A stretch of 64,000 nucleotides of DNA from Orbicella franksi (taxonomy: Eukaryota), in contig OZ116698.1 in NCBI GenBank assembly GCA_964199315.1, positions 6,758,001 to 6,822,000 of the forward strand, given 5' to 3'. The position numbers and the translations under genes are program-made. Numbering within the stretch: the stretch's first letter is position 1; every line of letters starts with the position of its first letter. Below the pieces are notes generated by a model that was not told the origin of the DNA, did no database searches, and was given only the letters and a program-made list of their open reading frames with translations. Of this stretch, positions 4 to 62,242 are shown piece after piece.

Positions 4-492
4 ATGAGTGCCAATGGGCATATTCCATCAGGTTACTACACTGAACCTGGGAAGAACAAGTCTCCGAAAGGGAAGGATGGAAAAAGGAAATCCAGGGAGC
101 TAGAAGACAGCGGAAGATACAAAGGGGAGGTTTTAGTACCAGTGAGAGAGGTACAGTTATGGCCGTTGGAAAACTCATCAAATCAACCGCCATACCCACT
201 TCCTAAGGAAGATTACGACACGGATGGAGCAACTTGGTACTATGCTAGATCAACTGATGGGCAAAGCTTGGCCAGTTCAAGATCAGAAAGTGCTTTGATT
301 CCGCCTTCAGCGGCTGAAAACTATCCAAGGCACGGCTCCCAAAACGTCAATGGCAGGATTGCCGCTCCGTCACTCCAGCAGGATGCGTCACCAACTACAG
401 CAAAAGTAATGGACGACCAATTTCATGCAGACCTAGATCCAGATAAACTTAAACGCGTCAAGCGAGTCGGTGTTCCAATTTTGCCAGAATAG
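4..492 (+). CDS. 3-prime terminal coding segment of an unidentified gene, probably extending left of the window; low-complexity, possibly a cytoplasmic tail
   Basis: 162-codon open frame starting at the window edge and ending at TAG 490-492. Protein-like S/P/G/K/D-rich composition, no recognisable domain. AATAAA at 791-796 could be the polyA signal. Confidence 0.6.
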   Translation: MSANGHIPSGYYTEPGKNKSPKGKDGKRKSRELEDSGRYKGEVLVPVREVQLWPLENSSNQPPYPLPKEDYDTDGATWYYARSTDGQSLASSRSESALIPPSAAENYPRHGSQNVNGRIAAPSLQQDASPTTAKVMDDQFHADLDPDKLKRVKRVGVPILPE

Positions 493-4388: not shown

Positions 4389-5908
4389 ACTTTTCGCCTT
4401 CCACGTTCGTCCGCGCACTTCACTCTCGGGAGTCACACTCGTGCTCTGCCCCGCCTGTTCCGCCTTCAGGCTAGGGAGTTCGAGGGCGCGATATGAATCT
4501 TGTCTGTGTCTCAGATCTTTTCTTTGTCCCACGTCCTGCGCTTCTACAGGATAAACATTGTCTCTTTCTCTTTTCACTACCGAGCCACAATTTTTTCTCT
4601 AGGTACCTCTTTATTTTTCTTTAGATGATTTTTGTTTTTAAATTCTCTTGCAGTGGAGTAGGAGTGTTTAGTTTCTTTGGATAATTTTAGCTTTCTTTAT
4701 CGCTTGAAAAATTTTGGTTTGGTCAAGATGGCAGCTGTTTGGAGATACAGTAATGAGAACATTTCTATGCCATATGACTTCATGCTCCATATTACGCACC
4801 TCAAAGAAAATATTTGGATATGTTATAAGACTTATAAATCCACCAGGTTTCCTTTTCAGAGCTTTAATATTTGAACGACTAGTCCATAATCTACACAACC
4901 TAAGGGTGTTTACATTGAGGACTGAAAGATAAGGCCCGATAAAGAATCTCGAACAAATTGCAATTGTGAGGTATTTTGGACATCAGTGAATTTTAGCTTA
5001 AAATCTGTTGCTCACATATCGTTCAGATTTATCGATCATGCTACTTTTTACATATATTAAAATACGTTTAAACGACAATTTAATGCTTAACATTAAATTA
5101 AGGGTTTATTTTGAACGAAACTAACCGCCGAAGTGGGAGTTGGTTGAGTTGGTTTTACTTAGTACTTTCCACCACACGGAAAGGAGAAACCAGGACGACC
5201 AATCACAATGCATCTGACATATGTTCAGCGTCTTCTGGGAGAAATTGAAGGGATACTACAGCCGAGTCAAATTGTGGCACTTTTTCTGAAAATTAGGACA
5301 GCTGGCGGAAACTTGTGGTCACGTGCTCCGCAGCCAACCGCTTATGGTTATATAATTAGCGTTTCTAAGACAATGACGGTGATACGACGCTCGGCGGACT
5401 AATTACGTGATTTCTGGTGGTGAACCATCCTTATGCAGCGACGCCGGTGCCATTAATGGAGCTAAATATCATACAGTGCACGTGGTTATCACCAGCTAGC
5501 GAAAAATGGCCATGAAAAAATACGACGTTATTTCAAAAGACTGTTAACAGCCGAATTAAAAGGCAATCTTATTTTTTGCCTTCGTTAAGTTCCAGAGGTC
5601 TATGTTGTCACAAAGGTAGCCCTTACTTTGATTCAAAGTATCAATAAGTGGAACTTGATTGCTTCCCCCATTTAAGCTAATCCATAGCAACCTGTTTATT
5701 CCATAAAACCCTGCATATAGCTTGTGTATTATACATATTGTTGTAATTAGGATTTCTATATACCGTTAAAACCATCTGGTGTAGGGTGGAATCTTTGACC
5801 CCAACATCTACCATATGTTCCGCTTTGCTTCTAAGAATTTATTTCAAGTCTTAATATCTATTCTTAGGGAGTATTGTGCCACAACTATTTATAGTACTTA
5901 ATTATTGT

Positions 5909-7274
5909 CTATCGACATCCACACGCCGACGCAGTCATTTCAGGAAATGCCTTCAATATAATGGCGTTGTCCTCCCCATTGCGATATAAGACTGAGAGCG
6001 AATGCAACTCTGTTGGAACACAAGAAGGGCTCGGAACATAGCTGTAAGAGGCATGGTATTGGAGAATGTTCTGCAAGATGGCGTGATTGGTGACGTCCAG
6101 TGGGTAAACTGGAACTTTGGGGCAGGTTCCCTCACAGTAATTAGCCCAATAGCTTCGAGGCGTGATTATCCATCGGTTCCACTTGAGGTCTTTGAAACGC
6201 ACCCTTAAGCGGCGTCGGCGGCAGTGCCTTTCTTGGATAGCTCGACTTTGACGATCGATTACTGTTGTATTTGTGCGGAACATTAGAAATGGTTTGGCCC
6301 GTTTTGTTCCTAACTCGATGCTTCCAAGAGTTGTCTGGGAAGATTCATCTTCCGAATCCCTCGTGTAGGTCACTAGAAAGGGCCTATGTCTTCCTTTCTT
6401 ACCAATATGAAATTCAGCGCACAGGGCACCATCAACAGACAGCCGAAATCCCATTTTTCTTTCTGATTCTTGAGTTATCATTTTCACAGCAGTCGTGACG
6501 TTGAACTCTAGCCACTGACCTTTTAAGGAGTTCTTTACTGTTAAGGAATCTACTAATGTTTTCGTGGGATTCTTTCCGTTAACGAAGCTATGCACCATAA
6601 CTGAATATTCACATCTCAGCTGTTCGATGTCAGTAGCCTTTTTCTTAAGAACACGAAGTTCAGCTTTCACCAAATTCTTTGATGTCATAGAGCGTAAATC
6701 AAACATTAATTCAAAAGCTCTCATGGGCATTACTTGTCTAACTCCTCCTATTTTTCAAGAAAGAAAAAGAAACTCAAATAGTTGCATCTTTCCGGACTAT
6801 GCTATCAAACTTCATCTTTACAAAGTTTTCGATATGACAACAATTGGTAAATATGCATCAATAAAAGGTTTTGGACGACAGCTTAAGTTTTGGTTACCTT
6901 GTTGTCTAACAGTGCAGCCCTAATATTCTCTAAGTGACAGATTTAATTGTCCTACGTGATGACTGAAAGACAAATGTCCATAACCAAAGCGTTAAGCAGG
7001 TGTTAATGTCGAACGTTGATTCAACAAGCCTACCTTCGAGAAAGAAAGCAGTTATGGTGTTCCTGCAGTTTTTCCTTGCGGGATAGTGCCTTTGTCGATA
7101 AAGCTTTAGAAGGAATCTCGGTACGGCATGTTCTTGCTTGACGTATGAGAAACCTCCACCTGATTCCAAAAGCTGCGAATTGGAAGATGTACTGCTCGAG
7201 CGAATTGAATCAGCAATCGGAAAAGGAGTTAGTGCAAAAGCCAATGCTGCTAACAGCACATTAAAATGATGCAT
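5909..7274 (-). CDS. TGF-beta superfamily ligand, BMP/GDF-like (paralog A), about 359 aa, 2 coding exons, lacking the inter-chain cysteine
   Basis: Exon 1 7274-7034 (signal peptide MHHFNVLLAALAFAL, prodomain VPRFLLKLYR); donor GAAG|GTAGGC. Acceptor TTTCTTGAAAAATAG|GA; exon 2 6747-5909, phase 1. Furin-type RQSR site. Cystine knot C-RRR...WIITP...YCEGTC...TNHAILQ...SCVPTEL...CGC. AATAAA (minus strand) at 5700-5695. Confidence 0.95.
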
Positions 7275-7665
7275 GTTTATAGCATCTGGTGTATAGTGAA
7301 TACTTGGACGGGCACATCCAGTAAAAATTCAATTTTTCAAATTCTCCTGACGAGCCTTTAGATCAGACGAATTCGATAGGACACGACTGTGGTTATGATT
7401 TGGAAATAAATGCGCCTATGTTATTATGTATACGCGTCTGTTTCGCCACTGACCTGATCTCTCGCTATGGGTCGACAACTCTTTAATGAGTAGCGCATTA
7501 GAAAAAAACCGATAAAGATGTGAGATGACTGATAAAGAGACTTAGCCTTGAGAACAATTTGCTTAAAGATATGTCTAATTTCCTTTTAAAATATGCTGAA
7601 CTGCTAAAGAATTCGAATTCTTTCAGCTGAGGAAATTAAATGGTCGACACAATATTCTTTTTTTA

Positions 7666-8165
7666 CACCCGCTTTCAGTGTTACGTGCAAAGGCGACATC
7701 TTTCGACCATCTTTCCACATGCTATGAAAGACCGTTAAACTGTGAAACTAGTAGTTTTTCCGGTCATTAGCGGAGGAAATGACAAGTTAATGATAATTAC
7801 CTACCCCAAATGGCTGAAGAAGATTTGGACTTTGCATGTTACCGTATTTACGGGATGATTCAAGCGATTTAGTGTAGTCGATCGGTTCTCAATAGTGACT
7901 TCCGGTGAAATTGGGCCGCTGCCACTCTTAATATTCGCAACGTGTAAACATTCACAACAATCGACTTATTTCTGCTAGAATGACTTCTTGATACTCCTAA
8001 CCTTAATTTGATGTCAAATAAATCAATCTTTCATCATTACAATTCGAGTTCGACCGTAAAGAAGTCCGTTGTGCTTACATTTTCTAAGTAGGCCAGGCTA
8101 CTTAGCAGGTCGAAAGATGGCATGTCGAAAGATGTGGCCTATGCAAGTAACACTGAAAGCGGGTG
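7666..8165. mobile_element. 500-bp MITE with TA flanks (Tc1/mariner-type TSD by inference)
   Basis: TA|CACCCGCTTTCAGTGTTAC...GACATCTTTCGAC at the left; GTCGAAAGATGT...GTAACACTGAAAGCGGGTG|TA at the right; about 45-bp imperfect TIR. Confidence 0.8.
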
Positions 8166-8741
8166 TAATACACATTGAAATACACTGAGATAACAAGAAA
8201 GTTTTGGTTAATTGATTAGCTTTTCAGCTATGCGTTATTCAGTTCAGTAGCCACAAACGAAATATATCTAAATGGTAAAACTGATAAAACAGAATGTTTA
8301 ACTTTGGACCATTCTAGCTCAGCTTAACTCTGTCGTCTATTTTTCCATCCACGACCATGCAAAAAGCCCGGTAGCAGGGATTTCAATCCAGCTTTATGTG
8401 TGTTTGGAATAGAGGGTCCAAGTCGAAAACCTATGACCGCTGAAGAAAACGCTTAATGATCTCAAGAGATTTTGATCAGCGAAGAAAATTGTTTTAAAAT
8501 CCATCTGAGTTTCGTCAGCTGAGAAAATCTTTTTCTTCTGATAAAACAGTTTTAACTGGCTTTTTCGCTTTGCGAGCCTGGGTAAGGGGGAGGGGGTGTT
8601 CTTGTACTTTGAGATCCCCCTCCCATGTCTCCCCTCTCAAAGAGTAAGGAGTAATCAAAAGAAGTCAACATTATATTACGTGCAAAACATCCAAACTTGT
8701 TTTCTCTTGAGAAAGTCACGTGTCACTTGTGAAGTCATATA

Positions 8742-9786
8742 CGCTGGACAAACTGTTCTGGATCGACGTTTTACAACAAACAATTAAAACGAACAAAGTG
8801 ACACAAATAATTTTGTGATTGTCTTAAACTTTACTAAGTTCCACACAGGGAAACTTATTTTTATATGGATCACGCAAGAAAGGCTTGCTTTACACCTTGT
8901 CCAAATTTGGTATGTAACTGAGTCACAAAAGTATGCAAAATCACGTAATTTCTGAGAAAGAAGAGTCACATTTGGACGGTTGTTTTGAGAAGAAACTCTT
9001 CACGTGCTGGTGCTTTTTTTGTCAAGATTTTGACAAGAAAGCATGAGAAAGACTTACAACTTATTGGTCACTGAAATACAATACTATCTTCAGAAACTGA
9101 TCTTCGTTCTTGCCAAGGATCGGTCTTCCACACGTTTTGAAAATGGCTGCCTTTAGCTCGCCCTCCGTACAAGCCACAAATGCACAACGGATATTGCTGT
9201 GTTAAGGCGCTGTTGGCTAAGAACCTCAGACACTGGTATTTGTGCTTTTAGGAAAGTTTTCAGACCTTTTTCTGGGCTCGTCTACCAGGAGCTTGCCATT
9301 TTCTCACATAACAGCTTGAATTAACTTTGCTTGGTTTGCCTTGTGGTATTTTGCGGTCCTTCAGTGGCAGCATCACTACTTGAATCTTCGATTCTCTTTA
9401 CACCGCTTATATATCACAGGATTACAGTGTTGTTTAGATGGATTATCGCTCCGGCCTCCTTCATGCCATCTCGTCGAATTTGTGAAAAAAAATCCATAAA
9501 CAAGTGACGATGTTCTTCGCACAACAGCATTGGTCTAACACTACGATGTCGATGTAAACCAAAACTATTTTTTCCCAGAAATCGCGCAATTTTCCTTACT
9601 TTTGTGATTCAGTACGCAAATTTAGATACGTTGTAGCGCAAGTCTTCCTTGCGTGATCTATATGAAAACAAGTTTCCATATGTGGAATTTACTAAGGTTT
9701 AAGTCAATCAAAAATTTATTTGCATCGTTTTGCTTGTTTTGATTTTTGGTCGTAAAACGTCGATCCAGAACAGTTTTGTCCAGCGC
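8742..9786. mobile_element. About 1.05-kb non-autonomous element with about 220-bp diverged TIRs
   Basis: CGCTGGACAAACTGTTCTGGATCGACGTTTTAC at the left is the reverse complement of GTAAAACGTCGATCCAGAACAGTTTTGTCCAGCG at the right. Similarity extends inward to about 8960 and about 9570. TSD not clearly readable. Confidence 0.8.
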
Positions 9787-10469
9787 ACTATCATGCAATA
9801 TTGACGTGAAACGTCTGTCATATTAAATATGAAGATGCAATAGCTAAAAAGTTTTTAGCATCAAAATATTTATGAAATCCAAATCTAGCCAAACATTTCA
9901 AAACAACTTAAACTTGAAAAAACTCCAAATTTAGTCCGGCAAAAAAAAAACCTCCTTTGAATACATGGTTGCCATAGAAGTTAAATCACATGACCAGAAA
10001 AGTCCCACAGCTTCCAAGCTATTCAGACCGCGGAACGGGCGGGGGATGCCCGCGCTGACCTTAACATTTGTAATAACTTACCTTAGTAGAATTCTACTAG
10101 CATACTAATGCAAATGCTGCAATCTGATTAGCTGAACTACTCGTATACTAACAGCCATTAGAGTGCAGTGGCTGTGGGGCGTCCACGATATGCGACGTTT
10201 GTATCGTTTATCGTTTGGAAGAAAGTTTAAACGTAAATAGATAATTAAATTCCTGAGAAGACTAAAAGATCGACATTAATGGTTTCCTGACTTTAAAAAC
10301 TTGAAATTATTAAAAAAAAAAAAAAAAAAAAGGTGCGCGCGCGTAAACAACTGCAAATTTCCAATGCAAATTCAATCCGTGCGATTTTGTTAAAGCGTAA
10401 AGTTTAATAATGCGTAGAAAAATAATTGGAAACCGTTATTTGCGTTAATTTCAGTTAGAATTCTACTAA

Positions 10470-10576
10470 AACAATTAGATTATTAGCTCTTGATTTCTTT
10501 GAGGTGATAGTTGATACGGCCTTCGGTGTCATCAACTATCAACTCATAGAAATCGAGAGCGAATAATCTAATGGTT
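10470..10576. repeat. Short palindromic (fold-back) repeat; second copy at about 17739-17825
   Basis: AACAATTAGATTATT-AGCTCTTGATTTCTTTGAGGTGATAGTTGAT / ATCAACTATCAACTCATAGAAATCGAGAGCGAATAATCTAATGGTT form an imperfect hairpin. The same left arm (AACAATTAGATTATGAGCTCGAG) starts at 17739. Confidence 0.75.
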
Positions 10577-11887
10577 AATTAGAGTGCAATCCTGGTTACA
10601 TCTGAAAATTCCGCCCCTGTCTAGGAGATGCATAATCTTTATGATAAGCAACCCAAAGTTTCATTTCCATATTAATTCGATCATATTTGACAGAAATATG
10701 CGTGTTTTGGTGACTTCTTTCGAATTAGGACACTTTGTGCGCATACCATAAGGAGCATGCATTTCGTTAGCGTCGGTGAAGTTTTGGACATATTCCGTTC
10801 CCATGACAACCGCATTTCAACGTTCATTTTTTCCAAATTTGGAATCTTCTTGCTCTTATTAACAAAATTTAACTTCAATGCAGTTGTTTTCTTTATAATT
10901 ATTGTTCTTTTAGTATTGTGATATTGACTGTAATTAGCTTTGAGATTTTGGGTGATTTTCTTGCGTTTTGGAAAAATCGAGCAATCTAAGATGGGGAATC
11001 CAATATGGTGTGTGTTTAAAATGATGACGTAATTCCCACGTGATATTATGACATCTTCTCAATTTGGACGTACTATATATCTTCCAAGTTTCATTCGTTT
11101 CATTCGCATTGCTAAAAATATTCTTAAAGCTATGAAGAAGGTGCGGATTCCCCTCCTCCTTCAGGCATAGTATTTAGATTTGTTTTAACTACGGTTTATC
11201 CTTTGTGAACTTTTTGTCGGCGGAAAAATTTTCACAAAATATAATAGTACACCTCTATTAAGTCGCAATGACAAGATGCTCGAAAAGCTCCTGTTGATCT
11301 GTATACCTGCGTTATTAACGACAGTCGTTGGGTGAAATGACAAACTAATGACAGTGACATAAGGGAATTAAGTCCAAATTGCGAAACGAGAAGCTTTGAA
11401 ATTTATAAGGAAGCCTTGGATACCTTCCCTCACTGAGAGCCTCTAAAATGCATAAACGTCTTTGGGTAAACAGTTCAGAACACAAAGCTTCCAATTGCCT
11501 CTCTTTCGATATCATGGTGTTTTTAATTCCGAGAACAGTTCAAACGTATAATCATTGTGTGTAACCTTGCACGGATGGCAGCATCAATATTGTTTTATCG
11601 CAGAAGTTATTGATGTCGGACTGAATCATCCAGATCTTGGGTATTTTCTCCGAACACTGTTCTCTGGATCTGCTGATCACTTTTTCAGGCCAATACGGTT
11701 TTCATCATTTTATTATTATATTTGTTTCCTGTGGTAAAATTAGCCCATAAATCTCATGTTGCCGTGCGCTCTTAAGTAACAGGTCACAGTTACATCAACA
11801 TGCGGTAAAAACAAAAAAGAGGCCCTCGAGCCGTCAAGAGATTGTGCATGGAGGTCTCACCACATTTGACGTCATCTTCGTTCTATT

Positions 11888-12180
11888 GGGGAGCTTAAGC
11901 AAACCACGACGGCAACGGCAATGAAAACGTCTTCAAACAAAAGGCGTAACCGTCCTCTGCAAAACAAAAACTTGAAATGACCAAGTTTTGCGTATTTTGA
12001 ATTGAACGGATCATTTTTCGTATTTTCTTCTGGGTTCGCTGGCGTTACATCATTAGTTTGAGTAGGTTTTTAGACCACTCGGCGCACATGTAAGTTCTAG
12101 ACAACTGCGAAATTCAAAGGTAAAATATAAATTCATTTTTTCCAGCCGTCGTCCTACGCAACGTCGTCTTCTTTGAGACG
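11888..12180. mobile_element. Degenerate MITE-like repeat (GGGAGCTTAAGC...ACGACGGC family)
   Basis: Weak inverted similarity ACGACGGC / GCCGTCGT near the two ends. Family recognised only from recall of coral repeats. Confidence 0.4.
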
Positions 12181-12795
12181 AAGGGCAACATGGAATCTAT
12201 CTAGTTTATATAATAAAGAAACAAAAAATGTCAATGACGTCATTCACATATTGTTTACGTTTGTCCTCTGATAGATCATATGTAAGAAGCAATCAAAATA
12301 CAGGAATAATTTAGCTTATTACATAAGGCATCTCTCATGAGAATAATTGATAATACTAGCTCTTCAAAACTCGACAATTCACTAGCACCAGTGCACCTAA
12401 ACTGTCTGCACTGGATGTGGAGTACTGAAGCCAGATTCAAGGCAGCGCAATCAAGCACAGTTCACCATAGTATGGATGTTCTGAGCTTTGATAAATGAAA
12501 TATTTTACCGTGGTTTACATGTAACATTATCGAAATTTTCCGCATTTAGATCATAACAGCTGATTACAGCACATATAACTGTATTTCTTGGCATGTTTGC
12601 ATCTCAGTTACGGAAGCTTTGAAATAGAATATAGTTGGTATGGTTTAAAATGAAATCTTCGGATCGCAGAACTTATCGATGCATGAAGTTATCAATGTAC
12701 ATTGGAGTAAGTTATGCCCTCCCTTCAATTTAGCGTCTTGTGTCCAAATAGTACAAGAGGCTTTGAGCATAAGCAAAATTACATTTATGAAACTT

Positions 12796-12894
12796 GAAGG
12801 AATGAAGGAATGAAGGAAGGAAGGAAGGAAGGAAGGAAGGAAGGAAGGAAGGAAGGAAGGAAGGAAGGAAGGAAAGAAGGAAGGAAGGAAGGAA
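12796..12894. repeat. (GAAG)n/(TTCC)n microsatellite, probably the 3-prime tail of a minus-strand LINE fragment
   Basis: About 25 GAAG units with a few interruptions. On the minus strand an AATAAA (12904-12899) immediately precedes the (TTCC)n run. Confidence 0.9.
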
Positions 12895-13840
12895 TACCTT
12901 TATTTAAGTGTCAAACTAAAGTAGCAGTAAATAACCACTAAATGGGGACACTAAAAATAAATTAAAATTAACAAAACTATTTACAATTGATAAAATGAGT
13001 ATGAAATTAATGAGATCATTTACCTGTGCATGATTGTTGAGTGTGGGTTAGAAAGGAAAGAAGGAAAGGAAAGAAGTTTGGTTCAGAGGCGAAAGAAAAC
13101 AAGAAGCTACAAGGGGTTCTACAAGCGAAATCGCAAACAAATTCAACTGATGTAAAATTGTGAAAGAAAAAAATAAACACACTTCACAGTTCACAGTAAT
13201 TCGCTTCCCATAAAGTACGCCCATTCGTTTTATTTTCTTTGAATAGAGGAGTCATCGAGGTGGAACGCAGAAGGGCCTCTTAAGCTGGTTACACTTTGGC
13301 GACGACAACAATGGTCCGTTGTTCCATTTATATACACTGAGAAATTGGTCAGTTGTTAGAAATAATCACTGGTTCAAAACAATGGAAGATGCATTAGTGC
13401 TCTAAAATGACTCGTGATTAGTGTTTCAGCACGAAATTAGAATTATTCGTTTCTCATATTTTGTCTCGGAAATTTGCATGAAAGTAGACAAGGCCCTAAT
13501 CTGGGAAAGATTTGTTCAGGAAAATACAAAGTCATCACTTCTATTCCTTCTTGTACGATCTTCAATCACCGCGCCCTTCCTTTCATTATTGTGTTATATT
13601 TTCTTTTGTAATAAACAAGAATAGTTTTAAAGGACAGGGCTGGTCTCGATGTGAATGAATTTCCGCCGCACCTGCGACCGTTCTACAAACTTCCACGAGA
13701 GCTAAAAGTAATCTATTCAAGTATGTGGAGTGGACCGTGAAGAGCTGTCATATCATTATTGAAAAACATCACATGAATATTCACCTCTGATATGGGTTAA
13801 ACTTAACTGTAAAAGATGTAAAGAAAGCCGCTCGCCTATC

Positions 13841-13846
13841 TATAAA
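13841..13846 (+). promoter_or_regulatory. Candidate TATA box of BMP-like paralog B
   Basis: TATAAA about 155 nt upstream of the ATG at 13999. Confidence 0.4.
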
Positions 13847-13998
13847 TTACTCGTCCAAAAGACGACTGGGCTGTTTGAAAGAGAGCTGGTATCGACATAT
13901 ATAGGGTACGCGGTATTCGCATGAGCTCTAAAACCCGCACATCTCTCAACTCGAAAACAACATTCCGTACGTACAGCGTAATCGAATGACACTACACT

Positions 13999-15209
13999 AT
14001 GTTTGCGAGATTTGTTATATTCAGTTTGTTATTCTGCCTTTCACATGAGATATCTGATAAGATTTCCAGTCAATCTTCCACGTTGCTTCGGGGATTCAAC
14101 TCGGGGGACGTTCAATCGCAAGAGCTGTCAAAGCAAAGGGAGACCGTGCCACGATTCCTTCTCAACTTGTACAGAAAGCGGACGCTTTTACATCGTACTG
14201 GTGTAAACCAACGGGAGACCGACGTAGTAAGAGTGTTTTTCCGAGAACGTAAGTGCTCTTTAGAGAATCTCATAAGTTACAGAACGTAGTTGGTAGCCAT
14301 AAAACGTTTCGTAACAATAATTATAAATATCACCAAGATTTCTCATATTTGTTTTCTTCCTCTTCAGCCGCAGGGAATGGCGAGCATACAGGGCCACTAC
14401 ATCATGGATTTTACTTCAATTTGTCTGTTATAGCAGCCGGAGAAAAAGTCAAGAAAGCTCATTTGAGGATTTACAAGAAGAAACCGCTGGGCCAAAACAC
14501 AGAAGGGCATTTTAAGATCAGAGTTCTTCGCCTGAAAAATTTCCAGAACAGGAACAGTGGAGTTCTTGTTGCTTCCCACCTTGTAAGTTACAAGGAGAAA
14601 GTCGGCCGGTGGATCAGCTTGGACGTCACGGCCGCGGTAAAATTCTGGATAGACAAGCCTGAAGAAAACTTTGGCTTGAGTTTAACAGTAGATGGGGTCA
14701 AGGCTTTTCCGACAGATTTTCGTATTGGAGCACATGGAAAAAAGGCACCTTTCTTGGTAACATACTCTCCAAACTCACTGAAAGTGTCAAAGACGCTAAA
14801 GAACTGCAATAATAGCATGGTGCCAGAGGATGATGACGACAACGTTTCGCAAAACGCCTCAACGACCACGAGAAACCGTGTAAGACGTTCAAGTACACTC
14901 AATAGGTGTAAACGCCGTTGGGCTTACGTACAGTTCAAGACGCTTAAGTGGAACTGGATTATTGCCCCGAGTGGTTATACCGCCAATTACTGTGAAGGGG
15001 TCTGTCCACACGTTCTAGACATGCATCTAGAACCGACTAATCACGCCATTTTGCAAAGCATCCTTCACAGAATGGATGGTCGGATTCCATCCCCATTATG
15101 TGCTCCGACCAAACTGCATGGCATTAGTGTTTTGTATAAGACAAGCGACAGATCGATCGCGCTAACAGAGTATGGTGGAATGGTAGTGTCATCATGTGGA
15201 TGCCTGTAA
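13999..15209 (+). CDS. TGF-beta superfamily ligand, BMP/GDF-like (paralog B), about 363 aa, 2 coding exons, lacking the inter-chain cysteine
   Basis: Exon 1 13999-14248 (signal peptide MFARFVIFSLLFCLS, VPRFLLNLYR); donor GAAC|GTAAGT. Acceptor TTCCTCTTCAG|CC at 14367/8 (alternative AG at 14372-3); exon 2 14368-15209, phase 1. Furin site RVRR. Knot CKRR...WIIAP...YCEGVC...TNHAILQ...LCAPTKL...CGC. Confidence 0.95.
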
Positions 15210-20035: not shown

Positions 20036-23000
20036 AAGTTGTGGTCTCCAACCCTCAAACAAAACATTCAAAGACATAAAAAAAGAAATGCATATGATTA
20101 ATGCTTCAAGAAAGCAGCGTTTCTGCTAATATGTAAAAAGCCTGCTTGTTTTTGTGATAGTCAGTAGCTGCCCCATGGGCTATTTCGCAATGCAGATTTC
20201 GAACGGCGTAATGACATTCTGTACATTGCTCTTGGCTTAATGACTAGCTTGTAAACATCGGGATCAGTCCAGATATCAAAAGCTAAAATAAGGCGACTTT
20301 TCAACCATGACCAAGTGTTTGTTGTTCCTAAGCGACTATTTTACTATTGACTTGGGGGCCCACTATCATCCCATCTTGTGCGAAATTCAGAGGGATCTCC
20401 CTTAGTTCATATTAAGTTGTTGATTGTTGGCACGTGATCACCACATGGTGTAATATCTCTCATCGGAGCTTACTTTTGTGTGTACGTTCTCGTTGCGTTC
20501 ATGGATTGAACTCGAGCTGGAATTCTGATTTGAACTCGGTTAGATTCACTTCAAGTCACTTTATTCGGAGAAAAATTCATTACACGTCTAAGAGGATGGC
20601 CGCTGGCGCCCATGAACAATTAGGTCCCATGCCCCTTTGTCTCATTTGGATTGGTACAAATTTTACCTCTTGTGTTCTTTGATGAGTCATCAGGTTGACG
20701 TCAGCTTGGCAAACGCAAAGTGCTTTGCTTTATCAGAAACTTGATCAATCCAACTGCAATAGAACGGATAATTTTTAAGACACAAGGAAAACAGATGACT
20801 GATATACGATTAAAAGTTGCCGAAGGAACTTCGACAATCACAAAAGGAGACATTTTAGTGAATCTTTGATTGTCTTTCCGGGCAGTTTAACGATGACGTT
20901 GTCTTGTCATTAATCAAGTTTAACGACGACCAAACCATCCTCTTAGTGGTACTTTTATTGTTTTAAAGAAATTAACACTCGCATTTGATTAGAGCGAAAT
21001 TGTAAATTTGTCGTTAACATTTTCACTCCCGTTAGACTTCAGGTAAGTGGCCCACAATTAGACTTCAAGCAAATAGCTTAATTGTGCAATTCTTTAATCG
21101 TATTCTTTTTAGGATTTAAAGTGATCCTGTCTTTGAGAAACATTTTATGCGATCCGGCCTCAAAAACATGTTCAAAACTGAGGAAAAAGGTGTCCTTCTG
21201 GCGTTAGGAATTATGAGCTTGTTTACTCATTACGATCGATCGAGCGCTCGGTTTTGAGGGCAAGCCTTTTAATTTCAGACATGACGATCTGATTTCACTA
21301 TAAAACCAGTAGCAGACGAAGAAGAAAGAGAGCTGGTCTTCACCTTCAAATTTTTTTACACCTTATTTTTCGTGTTCTGGCTCGAAAAGAAATTCACATT
21401 TAACTAATTAATCCTGAAGACCAGAAGCCATTACTGAAATGAAATTTTTGACAGTCTGCCACCCCTTCAATTTAAAACATTTCTGCCAGCAGAAAATTTT
21501 TCGTCCCGTTAATTCTACTGATATGTATATTCTGAATATGTCATATATGTGCAGAAGCTTTTTGAATCTTAACCAGATTCTAATATTAAGGGTTTTTTTT
21601 TCCTTAAGCAAAATGCAATCATAGAAAATGTTGGCCCATAATCACCAAAATTAAAATTTCTGCCGCGCTCTTGACATTACAAAGTGAAAGATTATTTTCA
21701 CGTCCATTGTTTCTTTCCAATGGCGACGGTAGCCTCTTTCTAAACGAGATCCGGTCCGAGAGTTAAAGTGTGTTTTAGCAGAAGAAAGTATTTCAAATGT
21801 AGCATGTTCCCTTTTGTCATGTTATAATAATGGAACGTTATTTCTATAAAAGCATATTAATGTAGAATAATTGTTTTACTTTCTCACCAAAATAGCGATA
21901 ACATAAATTCCATTTATTAATTTCATCAGTTAAAGGTTATTAATGACAAAACATCCTTGACAGAACTCCGTATGCTCTTAGCAAATATAATTTCATTTTA
22001 CCCCCTGCCATATATATTTTTTTCTCATTTCGGAAAAATGAATTTCTGACGACGTATTCACAGGAATTAACAAGTTTGAGCCGTACTGTGTCACCAGGAA
22101 ACCCATTAATTGTCGAGCCAATTGAGAAATGTCAGAATTAAATTACATTTGTCCTTCTGATGTTATCTTGCCATTGAAAGTGAAAATTAATACAACATCC
22201 AGCTTAAGGCTCAAATAAATAAGTCTGTTTGACGGCAAACAAGGGAGTCTTTTTCTCTTCACTGTCTTTTTCTTTCTGGATTAACTATCGTAAATGTGAC
22301 ACAGATCAATGAAATATTTTAAACCAATAAGGCTTTTAGCCATCTAACAATGACAAAAATAAGGCTTGTTCACTATAAGTGAATCTTCCAGTCACTGTCA
22401 AAGGAAAGGGAAAACCACCCTTAACACAGGTTGGCTTCAACTGCTTTTATTATTCAATTGTACCTAGAGCGCGTATTTTAGCTTTGTCTGATTGCAATTT
22501 ACCCGCGAAACATGTTAATTGTTAATGAGGACTTCATAAACGTTGACCCGGCAGAGGGAACGAAATAAAAGCGTTATTCTGTTAATGGCATGAAAGCTTT
22601 CCAGATATTAGTACACTGCGAAAGTTTTTCCTCATTATTAAAAAATTCATTCTCCCTGTCCTCAGACCAAATTAATAATGCCTGACAGAATAAAGCGAAA
22701 AATATTTTCGCGGGAGTGTGGTTTAACCCCGAAACGGATTGTAAGGCTGTACGTTCACAAAGGTCGCAACTTTGGACAGCGAAACACATTTTACTAGAGC
22801 TGGAAAAGTAAACAAGAGCTCGCGATAAATTTTGACGAACGTCAGACTTCTTTTCGCTTTTATTTTTCAATTAGGACCAAAATTGCCAGGTCTTGGGCTG
22901 GCGAACGATAAAGCAAATTGAGCTGTAGCGAACGGAAAACAAAACAAACAAGATCTTCATTTCGCGGTTTGTAATTGAAAAGCGTCGATTGATGAACGTG

Positions 23001-23869
23001 CCACAGCAAGCCAGCAGAAATTTTAATTTCCCTTTCTACTGTACTCGCGAAAGGTTGGCCAGCCATCAGGTAATTAACAAGTGGGAACAGAAAAATAGTA
23101 AATGGCTTATTTTTGTCGGGATTAATTAAACAACGCAAAATGGAACCAGCCCAAAGCAACGCGGTTATCAGTTATGTTCGATAATTTCTTTCTGGTAACT
23201 CTTATCACTAGAAAGGTCTCAAATGTCTGGGCAACTTTTATCACTCTTGTCAGAAAGAACTTTAATGCTTCTGTGTTAATGAAGGAACGTGTAAAGAAAT
23301 ACGATATTTACCTTTGCTTCTTAGGAGATTTAAGTGTTATTTATACATTTCAATTAAAGAATGGGGTGTAATTGAACGCAAGCGAGCGAACTCTGTTTGC
23401 TTTATCGCGTATGCCCAGTCGCGGGGTCTGTCCAGAGTTGTGAATAATTCCTTAACTAACTTGCCATCTACACTCTACGCCTCAAAGAGGAATTAATCGA
23501 CTGCATTGTGATCATTGTTCGTTAGCGCGAAACTCCGTTTAATTTCGTTCGAAAAAAAACGAAAAACAATTGTTTTTGGTATTCGTAATTAGCGACAGCT
23601 CCCGAGGCAGTTTTCAATTTACATGGGTTTGTGGTCAGATCCGGTTAAATAATTAAAAGGCTATTTGAAAAGTAGGGAACATGGCCTAATCAATAGTATA
23701 CACTGCATTCAATTTAATAAAATTTCATTAGTGTTATGCTAATCTCCTTGTGGGGGCATCTTTGATAACGTAAGAGTAGCTTTTACTTTTATCAAATTTC
23801 TCAACTTCTCCGCACGATTGTTTTGCAAGAGGGCTCAAATTCAAAATTGAACCCACTTTTCTCAAGGTC

Positions 23870-24147
23870 CTCGCGCGGAGTGCTCGCGTCAAATCTCGAA
23901 GCAGGAGAGACTGTGAGGGTGAGCACAGAATGCTGACCGATCACAGATTCACAAAGTTTATTGTAATATTACTAAGCCTTTCTACACTAATGAATCTCTC
24001 TTGCTTTCTTTTTGCAGGCTTCAAATCGCATTCATTTATTGCTTCCGTAGTGTTGAAACGGACGGATACACACAGGATCAGTCAGTTCTGACGGCAAACA
24101 TCGACCGAGAAAATTCAAGCTCCGAGCAATGTCTGCTGAAATAAACG
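23870..24147 (+). other. LMO4: Putative distal first exons of LMO4: a non-coding exon ending 23918, and exon 24018-24147 whose last 19 nt encode MSAEIN-G (phase 1)
   Basis: Donor GAGG|GTGAGC at 23918/9; 99-nt intron with CTAAT branch-like motif and TTTCTTTTTGCAG acceptor. The only ATG in the exon is at 24129. Donor AACG|GTAAGA at 24147/8 matches the phase-1 LMO4 acceptor at 39030. The start coordinate 23870 is approximate. Confidence 0.6.
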
Positions 24148-27100
24148 GTAAGAAGTGATAGCTCAGCGATAACAGACGGTGAATTGTAATTTAGCAGTAA
24201 TGCTATCTTCCCAGAAGTTGATATTTTCGATGACAGCATCTCGCTTGTTAATATGCTGCTTGTCGCAAACTAAGCGTCGAAGTGAAACCAATTTTTCATT
24301 CCCGGTTGACCTACCAATGTAAGACTTGTCATTTGAAAGTTCGCCGATAGCTTTGAAAGCTTTCTGATTTGATCTCGGAACGCGCAATAATCTCTTTGAA
24401 AGGACACGTTTGAGGCACCAAAACTTTATGGATATTTTCACGAGTTTTTCTGCTCCCAGTCCTAAAACCACATCATAATAAGTAACAAGATGGCGACACA
24501 CGGCCTTTTTGATTAAGCTGTGACTGAGGATTAATTAAACATGCATGGAAGTTTAATATTGTATGCATTTTCAATAACAACTAACTCCTGCGATTGGCTT
24601 GAGGGTTGCTCCTGTGTGGAATTTTCAGTCAAATAATTGCATTTAGAACGCTTTCTCTTGCAAAGAAAGGCCATTTATGGGCGTAAAAGTGCACGTTTTT
24701 GCGTGGCTTTCAATCTTATGTGTTTGCTTTTCAAGTAATCTATTTCTCTGACACTTCGCAGTCTGAATGGACGGGAATTTATTAAAAAACGCTGCGAGAA
24801 GACGTTTGCAATCATTTGAGCTATTCTAGTGTATCAGCAAGACGCATTTTAATTCTTTTTTTCTCCTATCAAACTTGTGTGATTAATAACACCGCTTTTA
24901 ACAGCACGAAATTGAAATTATCAACCAGCAGATATTAAAAATGTTAGATTATGGCGGCGGGGCGCTCCAAGCAATTGTGTACTTAAATAACAATGTTACG
25001 TTGATTAAAAATGTGTCGCTGCGTAAAAGAGAAGGTAATATTATATTCATTGCTAATGGAGGGACTAAGAAAAATATTTGCCAAGTTTTCAGTATGGTGA
25101 ATTACTTGTATATCGACTACAAAGGAAACATCCAGAATTCAAACAAAACAAGGAAAATAGCAAGATAAAACAACCATGCAGTAAATCCCGTATCGACTTT
25201 TGGTCGGGGCTCTACGAGCGATATAAACTCTGCCTTTGCACACTGTTTAGAAGCTGGCGATCATTAATTAAACTTTCGGCTAAGGTTTTAAAAGCAATGC
25301 TTTTACGGCTTAAAAGGGACTTATATTTGTTTTCACAGTTGTCGAAAGTTAAGTGCTGTATTTCAGATTAAAACACGTTGTTTTCAGAGCTAGTATAGTT
25401 TGCATTAATGTGCACTTAGCCTAAAAGCAAATCTACAGCGATCTTTATCTCGAAATGGTTCTTTTTCAAATGTGCTTTCAAACCTGCAATTCAGCTTTAT
25501 TTCCGGGCCTTCCGTGTACTAGATCTGTTCCGATTTTCTCCCAACTATATTCGATACATTTCCTGTCAGGTAGGTGCTGAGAATAAAACCAATAATCAAC
25601 TAAGATATGTTGCGTTGACCTCGTCACTCAGGGAACTAGTAGTAAAAAAAAAAAATTAAGATAGTCACCACGAAGGTACCTTGTGCTATGGGATAAGCGC
25701 GCCTTTTTTATGCGATAAGAAACTTTAATGCAAAAGAGAAAAAGCTTCCGTATTTTTAGTCAGGTTTAAGTCGCGAACCTCGCCAAGGAAATATTAAAAG
25801 AAATCCGCCCCTTTTATCGTATCCTGTTTCGAGAGAAGTGTTTAGTTGCAAAAAGTGCTGATTAATCCCAATTCGTTGGTGACTGTCAAAAGCCCGGCTA
25901 TATTTTCTTTATCGCAGGAAGCTTTTTATTAACAGACTGTGACGGCCAAACGCCGTTAACTAATAGTAAGTGAGAGGGTTGGCAACACGCTGTGCTAAAA
26001 GGGTATTAAGACAATATTCCATCCAGTGAAAAAACAAAGTTATTTGATTAGTTTTCGATATCTGTTTTATACGCCCACTTTGGGTTTCCTCGAGTTAGGT
26101 CCCGTGAAAGCTACCGGCTTTTAAGGTCGCCAACAAGGTGTACGAAATTATTTATTACCACTGATTTACAAGTTAACGGTGGAGCGGCCAAGCGTTGAAC
26201 ATGCTTGTACGAATCCACCGATGTCAAGGCAACGATGAATTACAACACAGCGTAGGTGTACAAACACGCTAGCAAGCGAGTTTCGTTTTGCTTTCACGGA
26301 ATCTCTGTGGAGAAAACAAACACCTCTTATCTAGTGATAAAATATTGTGATTGAAAGGAAAGTACAGTGATGGCGAAGTACTGGAATGGAACTTTCAGTT
26401 TCTCTTGGTTAAGACACCTCAGTTTACGATAAAGGGTTTACTGCAAGGGGCTTTGACGGGTGATACTAAAAGCCATAAGAAGTTTCAGCGGTTTAATTAA
26501 TATCTACTAGTTAAACAGAAAGCATGACCCACGCATAGGATGTGCTGAGACACTCATGCACGAAATGGTTACGTAAATATTGGGTCAATAAATATGCTAT
26601 GTTTAATATCGAAATTGAAAAAATACACGCCTTTTGACTGTGGTCGCTCGTGCGGATGTCAGTGAATATTTTTCCTCTAAACTAGCAGGTTTAACAGGTT
26701 TTACCTGCACAGAACAGAAAAATCTTTAAGCAGGACTTTGCTGCCATCAGAACACGAAATGTCAGCACAGGAGGTATCCCTCTATCAGTTGGGTCAAATT
26801 TCTGATTGAACTTTTAGGGATAAATTTAAGGGTATAACTGCGTGCGTGAGGTTTTGCCCAGGCAAGTTCAGCAAAATTGTTTTTATCCCAGATAAGATAG
26901 TCAGGGTTATTTTAGACGTGGTTTTCCTGTTCCTCAGAGATAAAAGTTCATTCCATTAAACCGTCAACTACAATTTTGCCATGGTACAATTTTAACAACA
27001 CAGACAAACTTCATAGTGTTACATTTCTTAGTTTTGTAAGGGCTCAACTGCGAATCTACAACAACTTGTCGGCAAATTAATTGGAAAATGCTATCTAGAA

Positions 27101-56200: not shown

Positions 56201-59200
56201 AAGGTACAGGTGTATGTGTACATGCACAATTGTACATGAATAAATGTATATTCTCAATACACAGTGGAAAGAGTCTAACATCAAAGATCCCCATGAGAAG
56301 CACCCAAACATGCATGCAAAAGCACAGTCCCAGGAATGCTAGGGAAAAACACTGAGGACATTATTTTTTCAAGCCTCCAGGCTCCAGTTGTTCCAAAAGG
56401 TGGATAATGCTATCTACCAGATAAATCGCTATCCAGAGGAAAAGTGTTAACAAAACAAACCACGCTATCCATTGGATGGTGATTTATTCAGTAGCTAACG
56501 TTATCCACATTTCAACCAACCTGGGCCAGGCCCTCTTGTTGGGTAGGTATGCTCATTTTGTTTGAAACAGGCCAGTCTTACATTTCTTCCACAATTCTGT
56601 ACAAAAGTACATGTACATCAAGAGAGCAAACTGAGTCTGCTTTAACTGAGCATAACAATTTACACAGATACAGCTTATCTAAGGTCATTTAATATGTTTT
56701 TTTTGTTCAAAACAAACTCAGTTTTAGCACAAAAAGAAAATTTAATTTTGCCATCTGAAATTTTCTGCAATACTGGCTGCAAATACACATATGCATGCAG
56801 ATGCAGGTCAAATTACATACATAGGTAAGTTAACAGTTGCTACATGTAACTTTGAAAAATAGATGCATGCAGATGCACTTACTTCTTTGTAGATTGAGCT
56901 TACGCTTGCAGCCGACAAGAGATGACTTTTGTAACAACGATCAAAAGTACCAGTATCTACAAGACAAACCAGTTAAGACTTAAACAATGGTATTATTACA
57001 ATTTTCAAAGATTATAAAATGTAACGTTTACTTAACACAATTTAATTAATTTATCACATGACACTGTACATGTAGCATGTTAAGGCAAAAGGCCAAAACG
57101 TCCTGATAGAACTTGACTCTTCTTCATGCAATGCTTGCTGCAACAAAAACACTGCTACACATATCCATTTCAGAATGTGTTATACTAGGCAACTTTTTGT
57201 CTTGAAACTTGTCTTGCAAGAAAAGACAATTTTTCATCTCACAATTTGTCTTACTAAACAAATTGTGAGACAAGTCATAAGAAAAATTAACTATTTAAAG
57301 CAAATTAAAAGCACCTTTTATTTCCTAAATAAAAAACCGTCAAGAAAAAACCAGACTGTCAATCAGCTTTAAAGATGTTGGCTTAACTTAATCCATGTAT
57401 TGTAATTTCAAGATGTCATCCTCTGGTCATTTCCCTGCTATGAGTAACCACAATTTCCACACTTTGTCAAAAAGAGTAACTACCGGCCATATACAAGTTA
57501 ATGTACTACATGTAGTCACAACCCCTAAAATTTTCAAATCCTGTTTCCAGGGTTTTTCCTTCAGTTGTACAGTGAAAATAAATCAAAGTCAACAAAAAAC
57601 AAAAAGAAGAACGGTTAAAATCACCTGTACTGACAGAGTCATCACTGAATTTTCCCTCTGACCTCCTTCCAGTTTTCTTGTAGTCTGGTGGTGCTCTGTA
57701 TGGTGGTGGAACTTCGGCAAATCTTCTACCTGTGTCATCATGATCAGTAAACACACTGTCTGCATAATCTGATAAAATTTCACTCTCTGACTTTGTGAAG
57801 GTCGAGTGTTGCTGTTGGTACCCATTCAGAGATCTATCTGGTCTGTCTGGGTTGTGTTGGCTGTATTCATCGAAACGATAATCCACTGATTTACTCTCAA
57901 AGCTATCACTTGGCATGGCCAATGTTTTGGGAGACTGCCTTAACTTGTTTGATTCCATACTTGGACTTTCCCAGCCATGCTGGGCTACACTGTGATAGTC
58001 TGTGGACACAATGAATGGCTGTTGTTTGGGTGTGTCAACAAGTCCAGTTTTCACCATGACTAGCTTGCATCCTGTTTGAGTTGGGTCACGGAAACTCAGC
58101 GGGGGAGTATATAATGGAGTGCAAACACCACCATACATGTTCCTAGCAGAGTCATGTCTTGGAGTGGCTGTCTCTTCCTCCAGTGCCATCCTGTGTTGAT
58201 AAAAATCCTCTTGTAGATACAGCTGCTGTGTGTTTCCAGGTTCTGGTTCAGGAATCATTGTTTTGTAGTAATCTTCTGCAGCAGTATCCTCATACCATGA
58301 AGAATAGCCATTCTCTGCTTGCCTAGATGGTGAGTGGCTTCCCTTTGCTGATCGCTCCTTGGTGTCAAAACCTGGCTGGCTCATATTTAAGGATGTCATT
58401 CCCACAGGTTTATAAATTTCATCATTTACAAATCTCACTGGTTGCTCCTTGGAGTTTGCACTTTTGTTCCCCATGTTGACTTGAAATGTGGCAGTTGAGG
58501 TATACAGTTTTTTGCCATCAGGTTTAGAAGTTGACCTTTCCAATGGAATTAAATTCTGCTTTGTTGAAGAGCTACCCTCTCCAACCTCAGCTTCTGCCAT
58601 TCCAATAGATGATGTTTGAATTAAGCTTTGAGACTGCCATCCTTTGTCATTGTTGTAATTGTTGTCCTCTACAGAAAAGTCCATAACAGACACTTGTCTT
58701 TTGCCATTTTCACTTTGTGCTGCATATAATTCTGGGTTGTATAAAAATTGTTGATTTTGTAACTTATCTGTATCATTGTAATGAGCATGCTTCTTGGCTT
58801 CAGTGGGCTCTTTGAAAGAACGCAAACTTTGCCCATCTTCAGCTTGCTCGACAAAGTCACCCGGCATAGACTCATTAACAGATGAGAAGCTTGTGATTGA
58901 CAGGTCATCGCCATAACCATTTTTTCCAGATTTCCTACCAAAGTAAACACCACTTATGCTTAACTGCTCCAGAGCAAGACAGACGTCATTCCTTCCCAAA
59001 GATGTGCGGACGTGTCTGCGTGTGCACAAAGGAACCAACACATAGACCAGTAAATCTGTTCTACCAAATGAAACTCCCATGAATATACCTGTTTCATAGT
59101 CAGGATCACAAGAGACAATCTCTGGAACTCGGAAAAGTCTTTTTAGAGTCTGTAAAATTGCCTTCTTGTTCTCTGTGAACCAAGTAAAATGATTCTTGAT

Positions 59201-61004: not shown

Positions 61005-62242
61005 TTTCCGCTGAAAATGTGAAAGAAGTCCAAAAATATTCCAATGCAATGGTCTCTTCAACGAATGGATTCGGTGGTTAGAAGCCCTAAAAAGCCACAG
61101 CTTACGCAAATTTAACGGGTTGCAGTCTCTGTCATCAGCCTTTAAAAAACGGTGGCTTAAGCTTTAAGCTTAAGCTTAAGCTTCAAAAGTAATACTTTCT
61201 GGAGGAGTTGAATTTCCTTGTGACATTCACAAGACGGCTTTGCTTTCTTTGTCGCTGGAATTTTACGCCAACCTTTCTCGTTGTCACAATCACCGATAGG
61301 TAAACCAGATGTTATCGGCAATGTCCTGTCTGATTGGCTTTTAAGAACTATCCTTTGATAAATGTCAACGCTGTATTCCTTTCATGTGGCGGTCATGCAA
61401 CACCGCAAAAAATACCGATTGCCCTTTGTGTCGCGTTGCGCTTCGTCGCTTACGAGACCGAAATCGTTTTAAATAAACTCGTTATATAAATTTTCCATGC
61501 GTGAAAACACAAAGAAACCACCCATGGGAGTTTAGTAACTAAAACAACAATGCACCGATGCGAAAGCCAGTGGGAATCCAAGCTGATGGCACAGTTTGAA
61601 CGCGTTTTTCTCTTTAGATGACACCGTTTGACACTGTTGAAAGACACGACAATCCAACAGGAAGGAGCTAAATCCCTCGAAAGGTGAACTATGTTGACAA
61701 ACTTATTTCCAGCCTGCAACGACTCACAAAGTCATTAGCTCGAGGTGATTCAATCACGTCTGCACTCTAAGCAACCAACATAAACAACGCTTGTCTTGCT
61801 TTCTCGTCAGATAGAAATTTGCCACATCGCGCTGAAAGCTTTTCCAGGTCGAAGGAAACTGAACGCTAGAACCTAGTCTTCTTCCCTACGTTCTCAGCAC
61901 TTGTCCCAGACTTGCGCGCCTGGTAGATTCCACTGCTTCAAACTGTTTTGACTCCAAGGTGGCTTTTGTAAAATGTCAGATATTTGTCCTTGTAACCTTA
62001 AAACTTCATCTTCTAAGGAAGATTTTATAGTTTTCCTGTGATGTATTTCTTTAGCTGGAATTCAGGAATGTCGCTGATTTCAAGACGAACTGAGAAGTCA
62101 CTACTGTACATGTTGCACTGTTACACTGACTGTTAGTGCTAAGCTTTGAGTACAGGAACAAGTGGTTTTAATCCTATATACGTTGTACAAATTAGTTCTA
62201 GTACGTCAAATTATGTTCTCCTGCTGATAACCGCGTGTAAAA
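61005..62242. promoter_or_regulatory. Putative bidirectional CpG-rich promoter/5-prime UTR region between the DED-ANK and WD40 genes
   Basis: ATGs diverge 1.24 kb apart. CpG-dense relative to both gene bodies. Inverted CCAAT (CTGATTGGCT) near 61331-61340. Confidence 0.55.

Follow-up and report, generated by a model that had tools for sequence, protein, structure and literature searches.

Work on BMP signalling, which sets up the second body axis of sea anemones and corals, has relied nearly exclusively on four Nematostella ligands. In the coral Orbicella franksi, a 64,000-nucleotide stretch of contig OZ116698.1 (GenBank assembly GCA_964199315.1, forward-strand positions 6,758,001 to 6,822,000; hereafter the window, whose numbering is used below) carries two ligand genes of the TGF-beta/BMP type, called A and B, which are arranged head to head and neither of which encodes the cysteine that normally links the two chains of a BMP dimer. 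The question raised by this locus is whether these are working ligand genes, to which family they belong, and what the missing cysteine says about their origin and mode of action. As argued below, A and B are probably functional genes for secreted, non-covalent BMP-type ligands of the anthozoan Admp-related family. The two genes are made up as follows.

5909-7274, minus strand: gene A, a two-exon TGF-beta/BMP ligand gene with an intact frame and a product of 359 amino acids
7274-7034, minus strand: coding part of gene A exon 1, with the ATG at 7274, ending in ...TITAFFLE plus one G, followed by GTAGG
7033-6748, minus strand: gene A intron of 286 nt, phase 1, GT..AG, seen spliced in RNA runs X3 and X4
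6747-5909, minus strand: coding part of gene A exon 2 and stop codon (5911-5909), based on open reading frame, acceptor and Pfam; C-terminal prodomain and mature domain
5912-6241, minus strand: gene A mature domain, 110 amino acids, AIQERHC...CGCR, after the RQSR processing site at 6253-6242
6124-6110, minus strand: gene A CPKVP, with the proline codon (6112-6110) at the BMP2 Leu51 / BMP6 CSFPL position
6025-6023, minus strand: gene A serine codon at the interchain-cysteine site, which reads VPSPSCVPT
13271-13970, no strand assigned: block of about 700 bp 5' of gene B, conserved in other corals (tblastx to L029 8939-9634 and L034 9070-9625), probably the gene B promoter and 5' untranslated region (UTR)
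13999-15209, plus strand: gene B, a two-exon TGF-beta/BMP ligand gene with an intact frame and a product of 363 amino acids
13999-14248, plus strand: coding part of gene B exon 1, ending in ...VRVFFRE plus one C, followed by GTAAG
14249-14367, plus strand: gene B intron of 119 nt, phase 1, GT..AG, based on sequence
14368-15209, plus strand: coding part of gene B exon 2 and stop codon, based on open reading frame and Pfam
14889-15206, plus strand: gene B mature domain, 106 amino acids, after RVRR at 14877-14888
14943-14969, plus strand: gene B LKWNWIIAP, one residue short of the usual W-x-x-W
15096-15098, plus strand: gene B leucine codon at the interchain-cysteine site, which reads IPSPLCAPT

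In both genes exon 1 encodes a hydrophobic N-terminus and the motif VPRFLLKLYR (A) or VPRFLLNLYR (B), and both products match the Pfam families PF00019 TGF_beta (A, 101.3 bits, E 6e-29; B, 99.6 bits, E 2e-28; cut-off 27) and PF00688 TGFb_propeptide (49.6 and 68.2 bits, respectively). The splice joint of gene A was read from RNA contigs. In runs X3 and X4, from different studies, contigs join 6746/6747 to 7033/7034 and skip 286 nt (CT..AC on the plus strand), and one 1712-nt contig of X4 spans 5500-6746 and 7033-7396, that is, the spliced gene A mRNA with its UTRs, of which the 5' UTR extends to about 7396. The same junction is matched by an orthologous transcript protein (P0002), reading FFLEGGVRQ. 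For gene B the joint was read from word content and orthologue junctions: the sampled words of 13999-15209 were present at 0.88 in RNA runs versus 1.00 in DNA-like runs, which fits the missing 119-nt intron, and the junction VRVFFREPAG recurs in P0020, an annotated protein of Oculina, and in P0025, which derives from a transcript. The B orthologue of Acropora digitifera has uninterrupted cDNA contigs versus an interrupted genomic gene. Gene A was present in 14 RNA runs and gene B in 13, with both present in five (X3, X4, X6, X8 and X9); no gene A reads were found in the raw-read polyA runs X23 and X24, of which 12% of the reads were covered in each, a sample that is no test of absence. Against a second coral assembly (L029), the ratio of nonsynonymous to synonymous substitution rates (dN/dS) was 0.23 for A and 0.14 for B, and 0.17 and 0.08 for the respective mature domains; these values, well below 1, indicate purifying selection on both genes, with A evolving about twice as fast as B. 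A and B are intact, expressed and constrained genes. The phase-1 intron that the original prediction had placed at the same position in both (after FFLE in A and FFRE in B) was recovered, and the expression on which that prediction depended was observed, as spliced A mRNA and as the presence of both genes in RNA runs.

Each mature domain has exactly six cysteines, in a spacing that fits the C..CxxxC..C..CxC knot pattern. The processing sites RQSR (A) and RVRR (B) sit 6 residues ahead of the first of them, and both proteins end one residue past C-x-C. The site of A is a minimal R-x-x-R, conserved in orthologues as DR[QK][SR]R ahead of AI, and that of B is R-x-[KR]-R ahead of S, also conserved in orthologues. 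The seventh, interchain cysteine is absent, its place being taken by serine in A and leucine in B; in a phmmer alignment with BMP6 (PDB 2r53) the serine of A lies opposite the first cysteine of PCCAPT, which is the interchain one. The usual CC pair had earlier been read as PSCVP in A and PLCAP in B, with six knot cysteines only, and this is accurate (Ser 6025-6023, Leu 15096-15098), as is the manual estimate of about 50% identity between the two mature domains (53% measured, with 38% over exon 2). The interchain cysteine is also missing from a minority of accepted TGF-beta superfamily members.

The interchain site is occupied by S, V or L in all A orthologues and by S, L or M in all B orthologues. 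Because none of the orthologues surveyed, of either gene, keeps CC, the loss predates the divergence of the compared stony corals. Judged from these orthologues it is old, and not the lineage-specific decay that had been named as a possible outcome, and the residue at the site would since have drifted among small or hydrophobic residues.

As for the family of A and B, the nearest solved structures are BMP6 (best, E 2e-26), BMP3, BMP2, BMP7 and GDF5, with activin and TGF-beta much weaker. Both proteins group with the BMP subfamily, having no extra N-terminal cysteine pair and lying apart, in the tree, from inhibin beta A and the nine-cysteine genes L013 and L018. About 15 billion proteins, clustered at 50% identity and each cluster standing for itself by a single representative (1.84 billion searched), were compared with a profile of their clade; this gave 4765 matches, among which clade members scored 437-254 bits and were followed by vertebrate BMP5 and BMP6 at about 235 bits, the best named proteins outside the family. 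In a tree of 99 mature domains (LG+C20; support given as ultrafast bootstrap / SH-aLRT), a family of 40 sequences was recovered at 99/86, which includes A, B, a third gene upstream of the window (the upstream gene), a gene on contig C9 (the C9 gene) and Nematostella Admp-related. This family is separate from BMP5-8 (99/97, with the coral gene L001), BMP2/4 (96/94, with L003) and GDF5-7 (99/92, with L002). A second tree, of 53 sequences and 278 columns from prodomain and mature domain, kept the family at 96/90, with its five lineages in a polytomy and a very long stem branch for A (1.33). In a tree of 194 rows with all usable representatives among the top 150, the same 44 sequences stayed together (the family and its sister group P0079-P0082) and no other joined them. 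Clade members of known source are all anthozoan (Acropora, Montipora, Oculina, Pocillopora and Nematostella).

These trees place A and B in the anthozoan Admp-related ligand family. The proposal that the two genes lie outside the usual cnidarian ligand set was not supported, as both fall in a supported clade with Nematostella Admp-related AFP87424.1; the maximum-likelihood phylogeny of mature domains did set them apart from BMP2/4, BMP5-8 and GDF5-7, but within a known family. Database labels of the orthologues read 'BMP7-like', 'BMP8A-like' and 'BMP6-like' (NCBI) or 'Transforming growth factor 3', and a feature search of the ESM Atlas gave only generic vertebrate GDF5, GDF9 and BMP3 clusters. 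Orthology with GDF9, BMP15 or GDF3 was considered and rejected: the clade holds anthozoan-type sequences only, the next named matches are BMP5 and BMP6, and bird GDF3 lies outside the clade in the tree of 99 mature domains, although most representatives are nameless and the trees contain no sequence labelled GDF9 or BMP15.

A six-frame PF00019 search of the same genome gave 28 matches. They include a BMP5-8-type gene (L001, contig C8), a BMP2/4-type gene (L003), a GDF5-7-type gene (L002), the nine-cysteine L013 and L018, and two genes that resemble A and B. The C9 gene (L004/L037) retains the CC pair (AACCVPTSLHSMS) and shares 42% identity with B in exon 2; its Nematostella orthologue is in one 90% cluster with AFP87424.1 / J7GXK1 'admp-related protein'. 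The upstream gene (L005/L036, L036:5177-6444; C1:6684138-6684440) lies on the same chromosome as the window, about 74 kb before its start and about 80 kb from A. It has two exons and no interchain cysteine, reads PAATCVPT, with T at the interchain site in its lineage, and has an orthologue in Pocillopora damicornis (pdam_00007905); its mature domain is 55% identical to that of A, compared with 53% between A and B. The genome holds one CC-keeping member of the family (contig C9) and at least three without the cysteine (A, B and the upstream gene). The A/B pair is therefore not the special case for which it had been taken, given this third cysteine-less paralogue and P0103/P0117 and P0105 in the same clade. 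The family has a common gene layout, into which A and B fit, with two coding exons and a phase-1 intron after an FF[RL][ED] prodomain motif; the C9 gene (L037, ...TFFR before the intron) and the upstream gene (L036, ...ILFPQ) have the intron at the same position.

The same search revealed other TGF-beta-domain sequences. At C10:20.96-21.07 Mb there is a tandem cluster of about a dozen matches (L008, L009, L011, L014, L015, L017, L019, L021, L023 and L026-L028), with unusual mature domains (..FPNRS.LMALLEKK..) that keep CC and short open frames, some of them partial and one with an internal stop. L020 (C12:1937532, KSKCVP) and L022 (C14:2519427, RPLCIP) are very divergent genes, unplaced and on long branches, that have no first C of CC.

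How often the cysteine was lost within the family can be approached from the tree of 99 mature domains. There the CC-keeping Admp-related genes, including Nematostella and the C9 gene, form one group, and all members without the canonical cysteine form another (98/81), which comprises P0103/P0117, the upstream-gene lineage (100/100, including pdam_00007905) and a set made up of A, B and the so-called C-A-S-C sequences (99/89). The most economical history would be a single loss in the ancestor of this subclade, as the short mature-domain tree suggests. At least three further lineages of the clade besides A and B have no interchain cysteine, among them the upstream gene, P0103/P0117 and P0105. 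In the two C-A-S-C sequences, P0102 and P0017, the canonical interchain cysteine is gone and a new cysteine stands two residues earlier; IPCASCVPT is the reading of the gene at the syntenic position of B in a more divergent assembly (L038:9656-10486, ENA ERZ25073755), noted together with protein P0102. P0017 lies ahead of the same downstream conserved block as B, in a more divergent assembly, and is probably the positional orthologue of B in a more distant taxon. The new cysteine might represent a re-evolved interchain disulfide. Isolated G, L or S residues at the interchain site also occur in the BMP5-8-type representatives P0042, P0130, P0141, P0155, P0179 and P0201, so that loss of this cysteine is not very rare across animals, beyond the classic vertebrate cases. 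A literature search found no published description of a cysteine-less cnidarian ligand clade or of a coral TGF-beta expansion, in keeping with the original expectation that no such clade had been described.

The arrangement of A and B was confirmed, since their start codons are 6724 bp apart, head to head, as in the divergent pair first noticed at a distance of 6.7 kb. In the coral assembly L029, A-type and B-type genes share this head-to-head order, their ATGs lying about 2.7 kb from each other, and in Oculina patagonica the gene models of the two orthologues follow one another directly (G003795 and G003794). In Acropora digitifera (L031) both flanks are present (the upstream neighbour, an open reading frame at window 4-492, and the block by a LIM-domain gene at window 22979-25433) with only B between them, and no A-like gene was found within 10 kb of B there or in two further assemblies (L034 and L035). 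The adjacency of the pair is kept in L029 and Oculina but not in these three. A search with A gave A orthologues only down to 71% identity, though B orthologues were picked up at 37-43%, and A is probably absent from the Acropora and Montipora protein sets. Downstream of B, beside the LIM-domain gene, a block at window 23100-23700 shows 80-87% conservation in every frame when compared with L029 and can be recognised in Acropora (L031) as well as in L038; it is probably a UTR or regulatory element. Elsewhere in the window, a 577-aa open frame at 57509-59239 (minus strand) has no Pfam match, and a 156-aa frame at 60642-61109 (minus strand) has a sub-threshold match to the Death effector domain (E 1.4e-4, 22.5 bits versus a cut-off of 35.9), beyond which the Pfam search of the other open reading frames of the window gave nothing.

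The spacer between A and B contains three copies of dispersed repeats.

7661-8169, no strand assigned: repeat copy of about 510 bp with inverted ends; dozens of copies genome-wide at 86-93% identity
8740-9791, no strand assigned: repeat copy of about 1050 bp whose inverted ends (about 220 bp) match each other reversed; about 18 copies at 78-89% identity
10083-10583, no strand assigned: repeat copy of about 500 bp; copies on C13 and C6 at 87% identity

All three resemble miniature inverted-repeat transposable elements, and the 6.7 kb spacer is inflated by them; RNA contig depth is very high at 7646-7700. A compact bidirectional promoter was considered and rejected, the spacer being 6.7 kb long with three dispersed repeats and about 2.7 kb long in L029. 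The claim of a co-regulated pair is weakened by this, its sole ground being the occurrence of both genes in the same five bulk RNA runs.

The pair had also been attributed to one old inverted duplication, on the strength of a shared intron and shared prodomain motifs. The motifs VPRFLLxLYR, VT.AVK and PFLVTY are indeed present in both A and B; however, they are generic to BMPs (BMP5 has APLYMLDLYN and QPFLVAFF, BMP7 has APIFMMNLYN), and the intron is shared with the C9 gene and the upstream gene. Being family-wide, intron and motifs show family membership and not a special relation between A and B, and they were rejected as evidence that the two are sisters. The approximately unbiased (AU) test did not reject A and B as one clade (p 0.32), yet the trees do not establish such a sister pair or a single inverted duplication either. 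A is as similar to the upstream gene (55%) as to B (53%). A further character comes from the W-x-x-W motif, which is near-universal among TGF-beta ligands. All B orthologues, the deepest included, have a one-residue deletion here (LKW[NHD]WII), whereas W-x-x-W is intact in A, in the C-A-S-C sequences and in the other family members, and A is therefore unlikely to be a recent copy of modern B. Either the A-B duplication would be older than the compared corals, with later loss of A in some, or A would derive from another family member.

In the reading preferred here, A and B would be made as secreted pro-proteins and cut by furin-type convertases at RQSR (A) and RVRR (B), giving mature domains with only about six residues before the first cysteine. 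The six-cysteine knot monomers would associate across the hydrophobic interface usual for these ligands, with no disulfide between them, into homodimers, mixed dimers or both, and would act on BMP-type receptors. A structural model of the A and B mature domains gave a canonical BMP dimer, with an ipSAE of 0.82 versus 0.00 for the best control (among solved complexes 51 of 78 attain this mark, among mismatched pairs 2 of 108), agreement of three runs in at least 97% of contacts and a partner predicted local distance difference test (pLDDT) score of 86; Ser73 of A contacts Leu70 of B where the disulfide would sit. The receptor-facing side of A is unusual. In the BMP6 alignment, CPKVP of A corresponds to CSFPL of BMP6 and CPFPL of BMP2, with proline at the position equivalent to Leu51 of BMP2, in the type I receptor epitope, and almost every A orthologue reads CP[KR]VP. 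In BMP2, the L51P variant no longer binds the type I receptor. By analogy A might fall short of a full agonist and serve instead to modulate other ligands or as one half of a heterodimer. From its roughly twofold faster evolution, its long stem branch and this proline, A looks more derived than B, and a role as a weak agonist is also conceivable.

Several observations weigh against the preferred reading. The trees contain no named ADMP sequence, and the family takes its name from the Nematostella member. The single-loss grouping is supported only in the mature-domain tree and dissolves into a polytomy of five lineages in the 278-column tree, the cysteine-less members as one clade being not rejected (AU p 0.47). 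Dimerisation, receptor use and SMAD branch of A and B are all inferred. The A:B model demonstrates resemblance to solved BMP dimers, on which the predictor may simply have drawn, and gives no preference for A:B over A:A, B:B or combinations that include the upstream paralogue.

Among the rival explanations, decay or loss of function of both copies, with the missing cysteine a sign of lineage-specific degeneration, has next to no probability. The loss of a key cysteine and the faster evolution of A would fit it, but both frames are intact, polyA RNA libraries contain spliced A transcripts, dN/dS stays far under 1, and the six knot cysteines, processing sites and prodomain are conserved across many coral orthologues; decay was rejected on these grounds. 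It is quite unlikely that one old inverted duplication, with co-regulation through the spacer, created an obligate non-covalent A:B heterodimer like GDF9:BMP15. The head-to-head order in L029, the adjacency in Oculina, the five shared RNA runs, the passing A:B model and the 99/89 grouping of A, B and the C-A-S-C sequences are what such a history would leave. The model, however, does not separate A:B from A:A or B:B, and bulk RNA cannot show expression in the same cells. The sisterhood of A and B is unsupported in the 278-column tree, though not rejected (AU p 0.32), with A as near to the upstream gene as to B and without the W-x-W deletion of all B orthologues, and the search with A gave no orthologue below 71% identity where it did reach those of B. 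Acropora digitifera, with the same flanking genes, and two other assemblies have B without A within 10 kb, which makes an obligate A:B heterodimer unlikely for B and contradicts the earlier claim in its case.

It is likewise unlikely that A and/or B are monomeric or weakly dimeric antagonists or ligand traps, comparable to Lefty, that bind up type II receptors, co-receptors or BMP antagonists but build no signalling complex. Both proteins have no interchain cysteine, A combines a long stem branch with the proline at the Leu51-equivalent, tied to loss of type I receptor binding in L51P, and B has its deletion in the W-x-x-W motif of the same epitope. On the other hand, conservation of the dimer-interface residues is sufficient to yield a canonical dimer model with confidence, neither protein has the longer tail of Lefty, each ending one residue past C-x-C, and the mature domains are under strong purifying selection, as expected for an agonist and an antagonist alike. 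A more speculative extension, which we consider doubtful, is that A, B and the upstream gene form a small hexacoral set, partly clustered and descended from one cysteine-less Admp-related ancestor, whose products would act as combinatorial, exchangeable non-covalent homo- and heterodimers, a cnidarian counterpart of GDF9:BMP15; A would then be a receptor-biased or dominant-negative subunit, and the distant C-A-S-C gene might have restored a covalent dimer.

Stony corals thus have extra, conserved and expressed paralogues of a little studied ligand, all without the disulfide that locks BMP dimers. This suggests that BMP signalling in corals includes a level at which dimers are labile or mixed, perhaps absent from the anemone model, and offers an independent, non-vertebrate case of the effect of interchain-cysteine loss on ligand stability, heterodimer choice and antagonist binding. 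The value of the finding is moderate, as cysteine-less ligands are known, lineage-specific ligand expansions are common and the function given to A and B is a proposal.

Several known systems bear comparison with A and B. Lefty has no interchain cysteine and acts without covalent dimerisation; A and B, by comparison, end one residue past C-x-C and score best against BMPs, and no Lefty-type features were seen, no direct comparison with a Lefty sequence having been made. The BMP5-8 group provides the best-scoring structures and named proteins for A and B (BMP6, BMP7) and has the same prodomain motifs. The coral's own BMP5-8 gene (L001, contig C8) is nevertheless separate, grouping with vertebrate BMP5/6/7 at 99/97, and A and B lie outside that group, 40-49% identical. 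Vertebrate GDF9, BMP15 and GDF3 have six knot cysteines and no interchain disulfide and form non-covalent homo- and heterodimers. A and B likewise have six knot cysteines and no interchain cysteine but are not orthologues of these proteins; since no protein of the best 150 representatives outside the 44 sequences joins the clade and GDF3 lies outside it, the loss in A and B is convergent with the vertebrate cases. Cysteine-less TGF-beta ligands were already known, and A and B reached that state independently of them.

The closest comparison is with the Nematostella Admp-related gene (JQ959545), which Röttinger et al. (2012, PMC3531958) equate with the 'NvCmp' of Matus et al. 2006 and found to be switched on by Wnt activation, with expression in the blastula's central domain. 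Its product lies in the same clade as A and B and is 50-51% identical to both in the mature domain, its coral orthologue has their two-exon structure and intron position, and it shares with them the prodomain layout and the mature signatures NP[ST]NHAI.Q..LHH and CVPT.LHS.S. It differs in that both the Nematostella protein and its coral C9 orthologue keep the canonical CC, whereas in A and B, which are additional paralogues, S or L occupies the interchain position, A having in addition CPKVP in the wrist loop and B the shortened W-x-W.

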